From positions 31,555 through 95,554 of the forward strand of contig RQSC01001165.1 in NCBI GenBank assembly GCA_013416795.1: a stretch of DNA of 64,000 nucleotides. Direction: 5' to 3'. This document shows positions 59,458 to 64,000 of the stretch, piece after piece. Positions within the stretch are counted from its first letter, which is position 1, and every line of letters starts with the position of its first letter. The notes beneath the pieces were generated by a model. The model ran no database searches and had not been told where the DNA came from. It saw nothing but the letters and a program-made list of their open reading frames with translations. The translations under genes were made by a program, and so were the position numbers. The DNA is from Prasinococcaceae sp. CCMP 1430. Lineage: Eukaryota; Plantae; Prasinodermophyta.

Positions 59458-61818
59458 TCACTTTTTCCCGACGTGAAACCACCACTGCCAGGCGGCGGCG
59501 ATGAGGCGGTAGAGGACCGTCATGGCTATCAGGACGCCCGAGTTGCCCCAGATGTCGCGACCCGGAACGCCCGCTCCGATGTCGTACAGAGTGAGCACAT
59601 CGTCTCCCGGGACGGACTCCTGGCCTGGCTCGCAGAAGCTCAGCGTGCTGCTCTGGGTGCACGCGAAGCTGGCGCCCTCGAATTCGTTGGTCATGAAGCT
59701 CGCGAAGCTGTAACTGTGAAACCCAACCCAGTGCAGCCATCTCCACCACCAGCCGATCTTGTCGAGCGTGATGAAGAAGCCCTGCACCACCACTGCAAGT
59801 GTCAGAGGCGCGCGCGGGCGCGCGAGCGGTCAGCAAGGTCAGCGCCCGCGTCTGGCCCCACGAGGCGGCGAGGAGCGCTCGCCTTTCCTTCCTTCCGTGG
59901 ATACCACGCTTCGTCGTGCGCGCGGGGGAGCGCGGCGAGGGGCGCGCACGCACTGAAGGTCCCGTAGATGAAAGCACCCACGGCGATGCCCACGACGAAA
60001 AAGGGCACAATGCTGGCGACAACGAACATCAAGGCCTCAGCGCACGCAAAGGATATGAAGAGGTTCCACACGAAGAAGAAGAAGGCGTTGACGTCCGAGT
60101 TAAGGCCGATGAGCCAGTACGTTATCGACGAGCAGATGAGCGACAGCAGAAAGAGGAAGGGGAGCGATACGATGGCGTTAGCCACGTTGTACGCGGCCAC
60201 CCCGTACGTGCCGTTCGCCCGGTCGCGGATGAAGATCAGCTTGTCCTCGAGATACGCCGGAAGGACGCTGATGCTCATGAACACCTTGAAAGCCGCGATG
60301 AAGAACAGGACGTTGACAATGTCTTGGATGTCGTCGGCCTGCGTGCCTATTTGCAGCCACACTGTTCCAATCATGATACCCAGAGCGATGTACTGCGACG
60401 AGCGCGCGGCCACGGGCGTGAGCACGGGGGCGTGGGCGCAGCGCGCGGCGAGTGCGCAGGCCGGGCACATGCGCGCTTGCAGGCGCGCGTGCGCGCTCGC
60501 GCGGCTTTGCACTGCGCCCGGGCGTGCGTACCATAGCAAAGCGGAGCCACATGTACGCTGGGTTCCTCACCACGTTGACGAGCATGAGGCGGGAAAGCAC
60601 CACCGTCTGCCATAGAATGGAAGAGTCAGAGCTGCTCCCAGCGGTCAGTAGCGTCCACAGAGGTGCCTGGAAGCCCCTCGCCTCGCTCTCCTTCAGTGCT
60701 GTGTCCACCGCATCGCCTTTACCCGTACTGAGCACGGCGTCGAGCAGGTGCTTCGCCTCGGAGCTGTCGTAGGCGTCCAGAATTTCATCGACAGTCTCGT
60801 GCTCCTGAAAAGAGGTGTCCACCAGGTCGAGCATCCATTCGGCGCCGCTCGTGAGGGGCGGCACCTTGTGACCGAGTCCGGTGAAGTGGTCGACGGCGTT
60901 GGCCGTCAGGCCGAAGTATGCCGTGCGGCCGCCCGAGAGCAGCAGCAGCCCGTTGCTGAGATCGAAGACCTTCTCGCCCGGCTGATGGATGGTGAGCACG
61001 GTGGTCGTCCCGAGCGTCTTGGCCACCTCGTTCAGGGAGCGCACGACGTGGAGCGCGGCCGCCGAGTCCAGGCCACTCGTGGGCTCGTCCAAGAAGATGA
61101 TGCGCGGGCGCGCGACGAGCTGCACACCGACCGACACGCGCCGCTTTTGCCCACCGGAGAGCCCGCGGAAGAGCAGGCCGCCGATCTTGGTGTCCGCCTG
61201 GTCGTCGAGGCCCATGGCGCCCATCGCGGCTCGCGCCCGCTCGCGCGCCTCCGCCTCGTCCCACGGACAGTACATCCGGGCGTAGTAGAGCAGCGTTTCG
61301 TGCGTCGTGAGCGCCGCCGAGAGGACGTCGTCCTGCTGCACGTACTTGGCCACGGTCTTGAAGGTCAGCTCGTCCTTTGGCTCGCCGTCGACGGTCACGC
61401 CGCCCGTGACCCTCAGCTTGACGCGGTCCGCCAGCGCGTCCAGAAGCGAGCTCTTCCCCGCGCCCGATGGGCCCATGAGAAAGAGCACGCAGCCGGGCTT
61501 GGCAGCGCCGCTCACACCGTCGAGGATGCGCTTGTAGCCTCCGTCTGGCGTATGCACGCCGAAGCTGATGTCGCGGAAGCGCAGCCACGCGCCGCCAGCG
61601 CTGAGGCTCTGCGAGCCGCAGCGATGCGCCACGCCGTTCCCATCGAACGACGTCGCGCTCGAAGACGCCGACACAGCCACGGGTGCACCGTCGCCGCCTG
61701 TCGGCGTGCTGCCGCCGCGGCCGCCAGCCCCGCTCGGTGCGATAGCGCCGTGGTCGCTGCCGCCGCCGACAGTGCCGAGCTCGATCACGTGCGTCCCGCC
61801 ATCGTCACCGGAGGCCAT
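59458..61818 (-). CDS. ABCG: ABCG half-transporter (NBD-TMD); exons 61818-60532, 60392-59954, 59792-59458
   Basis: MGPSGAGKSSLL (Walker A), GLSGGQKRRV, FLDEPTSGLDS, TIHQP; TMD with RDRANGTY, QGFFI. Confidence 0.96.
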
Positions 61819-62856
61819 GCCGCGCGGCGCGGCGTGGCGCAATCGCGCGTGGCGGCTCCACGTGCACGCTGGGCGGCGCAGCGGCAAATTGCCAAGCTCT
61901 CAGCAAATTGACGGCAATGCCCCGCGCACACGCCTTGCGCGCTGTGCTGCGCCCTCTGGCCGCCGCTCCTCTTCACCCCCCCCCCCCACCCCACACACCT
62001 CTCTCCCTGCGCCACTGTGGCGGCGCCCATCTGGGGCCCCACCTGCGGGCTCCGCCCCGCCCCCGCGCGCCGCGCGCCCCGCTGCGAATGGCGACCGCGA
62101 CATTCACCAGATCATTCAGCTGCGCCGCGCCTCACGCCGCCCGCCGCGCCGCATCACGTGACGGCCGCGCCGACGGCGCCCGCCATCACCTCGCCGCCCG
62201 CCGCAAATAACGTCACATCCACATCACGTCACCGTCACAGCGTTTGATGCACATCAAAGCACATCGCATCGCAACATCACATCGCCTCGCACGCGGCATT
62301 GCCGCAGAGGGGCCCGGGCGCGACCCGCAGTGCGCGATGCGAGCAATTCAATTCAATGAACGGCTGCGTCAGCGGGCCGCCAACGCCCAGACGGCTGCGC
62401 CAAAATGCTATAATAAGAAAAGTAGAGGACATGTAACCACGGGCGACTGAAGTGTTCGATGCGGGCCGATCGCGCCGAGCGGGATTTTTTGGCGCGCGCG
62501 CGGCGATGCGCGTAGGCGCGTGCGCGCACGCGTGCGGGCACACAGCGTGCGACGCCTGCGGCAGGCGGGGTGGGGGCAACGACGCGCCGCACGTGGGCAG
62601 CGGAAGGGGTGGAGGTGGCAGTACGAGGCTGCCGGGGCCGCCAATTCGGGCGCAAGAGGCGCCTCCCCGCCCCCTCGACGCTGCGCACGCGCGCACGCGC
62701 GCAGAATTGTAACGGCGCGCTCGCGGTCGCGCACCCGAAGCGTGTGGTCAGCCAAGGCGCGGCGCCTCCCTCGCGGCGCGGGGAGGGACATCGCCAGGTC
62801 GCCAGGGGTTGACGCTCCTAGACCGCTGCCGCGCCCCCGTGCCCCCCTCGCCTACC

Positions 62857-64000
62857 ATGCCGTACGACACCACCGACGCGGGGGTGCGCTGGGCTTTAGA
62901 GCTCGCGCAGGCGGTCGTCGCGTGCGAATCTGTCCCTGAAACTCCAGCAACGGCAGCAGCTGCTACCAGACTGGGGGAGCATGGCCGCGCGGCCCTCGCG
63001 GGCATGATTTCCTGCGCTCCGGCCGGGGTGCAGCCGGTCGGAGAGCTGGCTGATCTCGCCCTCGTGTGCACGGTGCAGCCTGGCAACAGGCTGGCGTGCC
63101 GCGCATGCGTCTCAGGTATGTGGGCGCCAAGATGCTTCTCGCTAGCTAGCTAGCTTTCACACACACGCTTGCGTCTTCCTGCACTGTAATCGCACCCTTA
63201 GCAGCAGCAGCAGCAGCAGCTTCGATGCGATGCCGGCGACCTAACACGTGCAAGCGCGCGTGCACGCGCACCCACTCCATGCCATTGCCAGGCAAGGGGA
63301 TGAAGCTCGCGAGCCCGGCAGCGTTATGGCAACACTCCGCAAGCTTTGGGGACGACCAGCACAAGGCCATCCATGAGATGGTGCACCTGCTCGGGTGGGA
63401 GCAGGGTAGTGCGCGGTCTTTGATGTACGCGCGCGGGCCAGCCCCCGTGAGGGACGTGCCAGACGGTGGCGCGTCCGGCGCCTCCGCGTCCGAACCGGAC
63501 GACCCTGATGTGCGCGATCAGCTCAAGGAGTACGAGGCCAACCCCGCTGGAGGGCCAAGGCACGAAGCTCAGGCGGTCGCAAGACAGTGTGCTGATGGAA
63601 AGCTACAATGTCGCGCATGCTTCGGGGCCAGGGCGACCGTGAGCGGCCTGGTTGGGCTTCAGCAACATGCGTCTGCACCGAGGTTCGCCTCTTGTAGGCG
63701 CCATCGTGCGATAAAATTCTGGCTCGAGAGGGCAGGGTACTCACCGGGGTCGATTCGCGTCGAGCCCACAAGCAAGGCCAACCGGATTGTACTACCGCCA
63801 CCTCAGCAGCAGCCGACCACCAAGAGAGCGCGCACGTCTTCGCAAGGTCCAGCAACGCGCACGGAGTTGACTCTCTCGTCCAGCGGTCACGTGGTGTGGC
63901 CACCCGTTGTTGTTATCCACAATCTACCGACCAAAAGCTTCCCTTTGTTGATCGTCGACGCGGATGGGAGCCCGCATGACTTGGCGGTGCAGCCTTGGCA
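62857..64000 (+). CDS. SGS3-like protein: two zf-XS-like fingers followed by start of an XS domain; exons 62857-63115, 63292->64000 (runs off window)
   Basis: Translated by hand: LACRAC...LWQH...HKAIH..HLLGWE; LQCRAC...GLQQHA...RRHRA; HVVWPPVVVIHN. Intron GTATGT...CTAAC...CAG is phase-consistent. Confidence 0.8.

Follow-up and report, generated by a model that had tools for sequence, protein, structure and literature searches.

A candidate divergent XS-family gene with an SGS3-like layout in the prasinodermophyte alga Prasinococcaceae sp. CCMP 1430

Introduction

Is there a gene of the SGS3 type in a green alga outside the Streptophyta? The question is raised by one end of the stretch of 64,000 nt from contig RQSC01001165.1 that was analysed here as a whole (the window). 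The original prediction placed there an unlisted gene coding for two C2H2-type zinc fingers and the start of an XS domain. In published surveys SGS3, a helper of RNA silencing, is confined to land plants and the algae nearest to them: neither Morozov et al. 2018 (PMC5907777) nor Zheng et al. 2015 (PMC4457045) report it from chlorophytes or from red or brown algae, and a 2025 survey of 446 plant genomes, one prasinodermophyte included, assigns the gain of zf-XS to the ancestor of streptophytes (PMC13069868). Literature searched for XS domains in named green algae and for PF03468 gave nothing further on the taxonomic range of the family. The host had been described as 'prasinophyte-grade', which is roughly right: Prasinodermophyta branch as the sister group of the remaining green plants (Li et al. 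2020, PMC7455551).

Results

A spliced gene runs off the end of the window

The features of the gene, together with the variable sites discussed below, are collected in Table 1. Exon 1 ends with ...NRLACRACVS plus one base, and its last codons hold the C-x2-C half of finger 1 (C81 and C84). The portion of this finger encoded by exon 2 is LWQHSAS...HKAIHEMVHLLGW. Its C-x2-C-x16-H spacing arises only by splicing and is close to the C-x2-C-x15-H spacing of finger 2. Reading through intron 1 leads to an in-frame stop at 63151-63153, 38 nt into the intron. The GT-AG ends, this stop and the 13 indel columns found among strains, compared to none in the flanking exons, led us to accept the intron, and the splice originally proposed is thus borne out. 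Short tandem runs, (GCTA)3, (CA)4 and (CAG)7, lie within the intron (window 63140-63215), and their lengths differ between strains.

Exon 2 is translated as G-KGMKLASPAALWQHSASFGDDQHKAIHEMVHLLGW ... LQCRACFGARATVSGLVGLQQHASAPRFASCRRHRAIKFWL ... SSGHVVWPPVVVIHN and stays open up to 64000. It encodes, in this order, the remainder of finger 1, an acidic Ala/Gly-rich linker, finger 2, a Pro/Gln-rich linker with a basic KRAR stretch, and SSGHVVWPPVVVIHNLPTKSF. Regular-expression scans of the six frames found the XS-start motif once (63891) and a complete finger once (63609), and neither in 100 shuffles of the window. The two fingers expected after splicing (CRAC...L-x-QH...H(K/R)AI) and the XS-type start are therefore both there. 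It had also been claimed that the open reading frame (ORF) track missed this gene; this is correct, since ORFs running past the end of the window go unlisted.

Table 1. Features of the gene and variable sites among four strains (window coordinates unless a contig is named)
Feature	Coordinates	Strand	Description	Variable sites at third positions	Codons with synonymous differences only / with a residue change	Indel columns
Exon 1	62857..63115	+	ATG at 62857; 86 codons plus 1 base	5/9		0
Intron 1	63116..63291	+	176 nt, GT-AG, phase 1; splits finger 1	4/11	4/7	13
Exon 2	63292..64000 (window end cuts exon)	+	Open frame from 63292; 759 nt for the site counts	18/25 (binomial P = 9e-5)	16/6	0
Finger 1	63097..63398	+	CRAC-x16-H(SAS)-x8-HKAIH...LLGW; interrupted by intron 1			
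Finger 2	63609..63725	+	CRAC-x15-H(AS)-x11-HRAIKFWL, zf-XS-like C2H2 pattern; sequence LQCRACFGARATVSGLVGLQQHASAPRFASCRRHRAIKFWL			
XS domain, putative N-terminal part	63891..64000	+	VVWPPVVVIHN...; remainder on next exon (L001 about 3574-3900)			
XS part of exon 3				12/20	9/9	1 (L003 frameshift)
Region after exon 2	L001 3411-3489			3/8	2/4	58, including a 1-nt indel

The remainder of the gene in a sister strain

A word search with exon 2 returned a single cluster, P0001 (99% identical, ENA), whose coding sequence lies on a scaffold of 11,982 nt from a Tara metagenome (L001). This scaffold is about 96% identical to the window at the DNA level, and in exon 2 the window position equals the L001 position plus 60642. 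We took it as a sister strain and used it as a proxy beyond position 64000; splice sites in this part are those predicted from sequence. On L001, exon 2 goes 52 nt past the window to ...STVCWFHNEE, followed by a GTGAGT donor (L001 3411). The position of this donor is indicated by 15 near-identical ORF variants from several marine samples, which agree to ...FHNEE and differ by a frameshift straight after it. One further protein, P0016 (ENA, 97 aa; window 63300-63530), shares its first 77 residues from the MKLASP start in exon 2 and is unrelated from there on (..KECEDELRKALIETNRLAAACR); it may come from a contig that is chimeric or rearranged.

The next open frame (L001 3478-4233) reads ...LAKTPKLLWRGANGAADARGCALLFFDDNVDSLEAMRKLTQAAETMQSGRADWEEE...KMFVFRGSLADLEDVD and continues as a long Glu/Lys/Leu-rich stretch to a GTACGG donor at 4214. 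Candidate acceptors for intron 2 lie at L001 3489, 3531, 3570 and 3573. Since all strain differences in L001 3490-3573 change a residue, the acceptor is probably 3570 or 3573; the predicted one at 3489 may be an alternative. For intron 3, the best-looking acceptor (AG 4423-4424) does not lead into the conserved last frame of the gene, which stops at 4669-4671; a model using the predicted acceptor at 4393 stays in frame and has 646 codons including the stop. The predicted product has about 640 residues. A search for a spliced, transcript-derived protein found none, P0019 being a frameshifted genomic ORF. It had been said that sequence further downstream should complete an XS fold, and in the sister strain an XS-like domain is indeed completed, with a coiled coil behind it as in the layout of SGS3.

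Past the gene, L001 carries a convergent gene (4850-6496, minus strand, about 850 to 2500 bases beyond the end of the window) coding for a Chromo domain (PF00385, 47.9 bits), a PTM/DIR17-like Tudor domain (41.2 bits) and further Tudor-like stretches. The two stops are separated by about 180 nt.

The gene is conserved among strains

To sort variable sites by codon position, the window was aligned with contigs L001, L002 and L003, which gave four strains (Table 1). Variable sites lie mostly at third positions in exon 2 (18 of 25), and indels are confined to the proposed introns, apart from one frameshift in L003. We conclude that this is a genuine gene maintained by purifying selection. The exception is a one-base insertion in the Logan contig L003 (about 780-800, equivalent to L001 3787), which frameshifts the exon encoding the C-terminal XS part (protein P0019); it reflects either an error of assembly or, in one sample, a disrupted allele.

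Two adjacent exons point to one Pfam family

Exons were scanned one by one against the 24,736 families of Pfam, where the gathering score for XS (PF03468) is 25 bits. Whole exons gave no match to Pfam, and XS came up only with shorter pieces. With the last 43 codons of the window, PF03468 was the sole Pfam match (E 0.041, profile positions 3-19). It was the top match of the full exon 2 tail (15.9 bits, E 0.017, again positions 3-19) and of the head of exon 3 (19.5 bits, E 0.0013, positions 50-97), both below the 25-bit cut-off. Two adjacent exons thus match one and the same Pfam family, in the correct profile order, and the rough sum of their separate scores is about 35 bits against the cut-off of 25. 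For the XS domain called in the original prediction, Pfam thus offers two ordered exon matches, each of them below the curated threshold. Profile positions 20-49 and 98-113 remained without match. About 68 residues separate the two matches in the protein, compared to 30 in the profile, which suggests that about 38 residues are inserted behind the first strand of the domain.

We also queried the ESM Atlas, where scores below 0.9 are to be read as leads only. For the head of exon 3, the nearest neighbours were two streptophyte XS clusters (0.85 and 0.82), followed by two viral clusters, one of RRM_1 and one unnamed. For finger 2 together with the XS start, the nearest were zf-XS, XS, zf-XS and zf-XS+XS clusters (0.84, 0.84, 0.84 and 0.80), and one family or clan was common to 8 of the 10 best family-bearing matches. 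The outcomes of the two separate queries are consistent with one another and with the Pfam matches.

Structure and repeat searches brought less. The AlphaFold single-sequence model of the exon encoding the C-terminal XS part was all-helical with pLDDT 35-69, which makes it unusable for the fold. Sequence searches of the PDB with the finger and with the N- and C-terminal XS parts returned chance-level matches only and no XS-domain protein. BLASTP of the exon 2 tail versus the C-terminal XS part detected no internal repeat.

Fingers, coiled coil and the XH domain

PF03470 (zf-XS), proposed as a check of the fingers, matched neither of them at E up to 10, whether the whole exon or the isolated finger was scanned, and finger 1 was without any Pfam match. 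Modelled without alignment, the fingers reached a pLDDT of 43, which is unusable. We take finger 2, C-x2-C-x15-H-x11-H with LQQHAS and HRAIKFWL, to resemble zf-XS; the likeness of the fingers to this family is one of motif. Two fingers are present as announced, and BLASTP found no significant similarity between their exon 2 parts, so that the 'tandem finger' stands as a shared motif and not as a statistically supported repeat.

C-terminal to the XS part a coiled coil is present. Directly after it, AlphaFold gave a continuous helix over residues 121-212 of exon 3 with pLDDT above 90, in a region whose sequence is rich in E, K, L heptad-like repeats. XH (PF03469) was without match at E up to 10 in the product of the last exon and in the coiled-coil exon, given a 3′ exon structure that is uncertain. 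With no XH domain found, the layout is not IDN2/FDM-like.

Relatives and source of the sequence

Exon 2 was compared by phmmer to 1.84 billion representatives, and the search retrieved only its own cluster and one spurious repeat protein. The latter (P0002) was rejected as a relative: it is a repeat protein of 1900 residues whose match is confined to the acidic linker. Word searches with exon 2 and with the C-terminal XS part returned ORF fragments of the same species only. A phylogeny was not possible, since no relative outside the species was found.

A streptophyte origin of the contig would have argued against the original prediction. GC content around the gene is 63-72%, like that of the flanks, and the published genome of Prasinoderma coloniale, another prasinodermophyte, has a GC content of 69.8% (PMC7455551). 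The closest DNA, including the close strains, comes from Tara marine metagenomes. A neighbouring gene (window 60178-61887, minus strand) codes for an ABCG-type half-transporter and has an intron-like tail in its long ORF. Its product is 57% identical to a Galdieria protein and 53% to a Pyramimonas protein, its best named relatives, compared to at most 45% for streptophyte proteins; no named database protein near 100% identity was retrieved, the only such matches being fragments from ENA and Logan. A streptophyte can in practice be excluded as the source.

Discussion

What kind of gene is this?

The locus holds a genuine nuclear gene, kept under selection in a marine green picoalga, and we consider it rather probable that its product belongs to the XS family as a strongly diverged member with the layout of SGS3 and without XH. 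The SGS3-like reading is the best supported one: the evidence for it, read from sequence, is sub-threshold and mutually consistent.

Could the resemblance to XS and zf-XS come from chance or convergence, in a lineage-specific orphan that would combine, for instance, a generic RRM-like domain with unrelated Cys/His motifs? Such an orphan would explain why no match reached a curated threshold, why neither word searches nor phmmer found relatives outside the species, why the exon 2 parts of the two fingers show no BLASTP similarity, and why viral clusters (RRM_1 and an unnamed one) come third and fourth for exon 3 in the Atlas. Chance would, on the other hand, have to bring two separate exons to the same one of 24,736 Pfam families with order and positions right, to lead both separate Atlas queries to XS or zf-XS clusters, and to reproduce the finger-XS-coiled coil order of SGS3. 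We regard the orphan as unlikely. That the gene is a decaying pseudogene or an assembly artefact, or that it stems from streptophyte contamination or a recent transfer, is very improbable. The end of the window cuts the gene, no database gene model was recovered and P0019 is frameshifted; against this stand an intact frame with an excess of third-position differences in four strains and the 15 near-identical variants found in several marine samples. As to contamination or transfer, the GC content matches that of the flanks and phmmer sees no similar streptophyte protein.

Within the XS family, the main functional rival of an SGS3-type cofactor of RNA-dependent RNA polymerase (RdRP) is a chromatin protein like IDN2/FDM, which would tie Argonaute-bound RNA to DNA methylation or remodelling. 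The Chromo and Tudor gene converging on the 3′ end of the XS gene is in line with this, as is the basic KRAR stretch in the linker. However, this neighbourhood may be a coincidence, and XH, the mark of IDN2/FDM, was not found in the last exon. A role of this kind appears improbable to us.

A proposed mode of action

On the SGS3-like reading, the N-terminus of the protein would be unstructured and followed by two C2H2 fingers of zf-XS-like pattern, a linker, the XS domain, about 90 residues of coiled coil and a short tail. Its XS domain, an RRM-like RNA-binding domain, would be split by an intron and carry the insert of about 38 residues after the first strand. A hallmark of SGS3-like proteins is that they bind dsRNA carrying a 5′ overhang and work together with an RDR6-type polymerase. 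With SGS3 and IDN2 as models, two chains would associate through the coiled coil, RNA duplexes or their ends would be held by the XS domains, and the fingers would contribute contacts to nucleic acid or to partners. The protein would then stabilise, hold or present template RNA to the RdRP and Argonaute machinery. Judged by this analogy, the product is probably an RNA-binding silencing cofactor; it would adopt the XS fold, bind zinc and RNA, dimerise and act in silencing. The RDR-dependent silencing role and the older origin of the family put forward in the original prediction stand as inferences.

The gain of Dicer has been placed after the branching of the Prasinodermophyta lineage (Li et al. 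2020, PMC7455551), so that a plant-type SGS3/RDR6/DCL4 pathway is not simply to be assumed. A possible but doubtful scenario is that the SGS3 finger-XS-coiled-coil module was present in the ancestor of all green plants and lost in Chlorophyta, and that it serves here a Dicer-independent, RdRP-based silencing, possibly a forerunner of RNA-directed DNA methylation.

Should the protein be a true XS/zf-XS relative, it would be one that threshold-based surveys have missed. The surveys cited above depend on domain thresholds or on more than 50% similarity, and the protein fails both, which explains why it is unreported. If it is such a relative, the RDR cofactor module would date back to the origin of green plants, loss in Chlorophyta would be an alternative to late gain, and the gene would offer a testable handle on the use of RdRP and Argonaute in an alga reportedly without Dicer.

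Comparison with known systems

The XS domain is itself described as an RRM-like fold (Zhang and Trudeau 2008, as cited in PMC5907777). Generic RRM-fold domains have in their favour the RRM_1 cluster that ranks third among the Atlas neighbours of exon 3. The algal protein differs from them by having no RRM_1 Pfam match, and both its VVWPP start and its G-x-A-x-x-x-F ... G-[KR]-x-D-W pattern are of XS type. With the XH/XS proteins IDN2/FDM of RNA-directed DNA methylation it has in common a zf-XS-like finger, a putative XS domain and a coiled coil; XH is not detected.

With SGS3, known from Arabidopsis and other streptophytes, orthology cannot be shown, and the algal host lies outside the Streptophyta and reportedly lacks Dicer (PMC7455551). 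The algal protein further differs by its two fingers versus one, neither of them recognised by PF03470, and by an XS domain recognised only in two sub-threshold pieces, with what seems to be an insert of about 38 residues. The likeness to SGS3 lies in the canonical VVWPP-V-I-N start of the XS domain and in the order of parts: a disordered N-terminus, a C2H2 finger resembling zf-XS, a putative XS domain, a coiled coil and no XH. The two proteins also agree in size, with about 640 residues predicted for the algal one versus 625 for SGS3.
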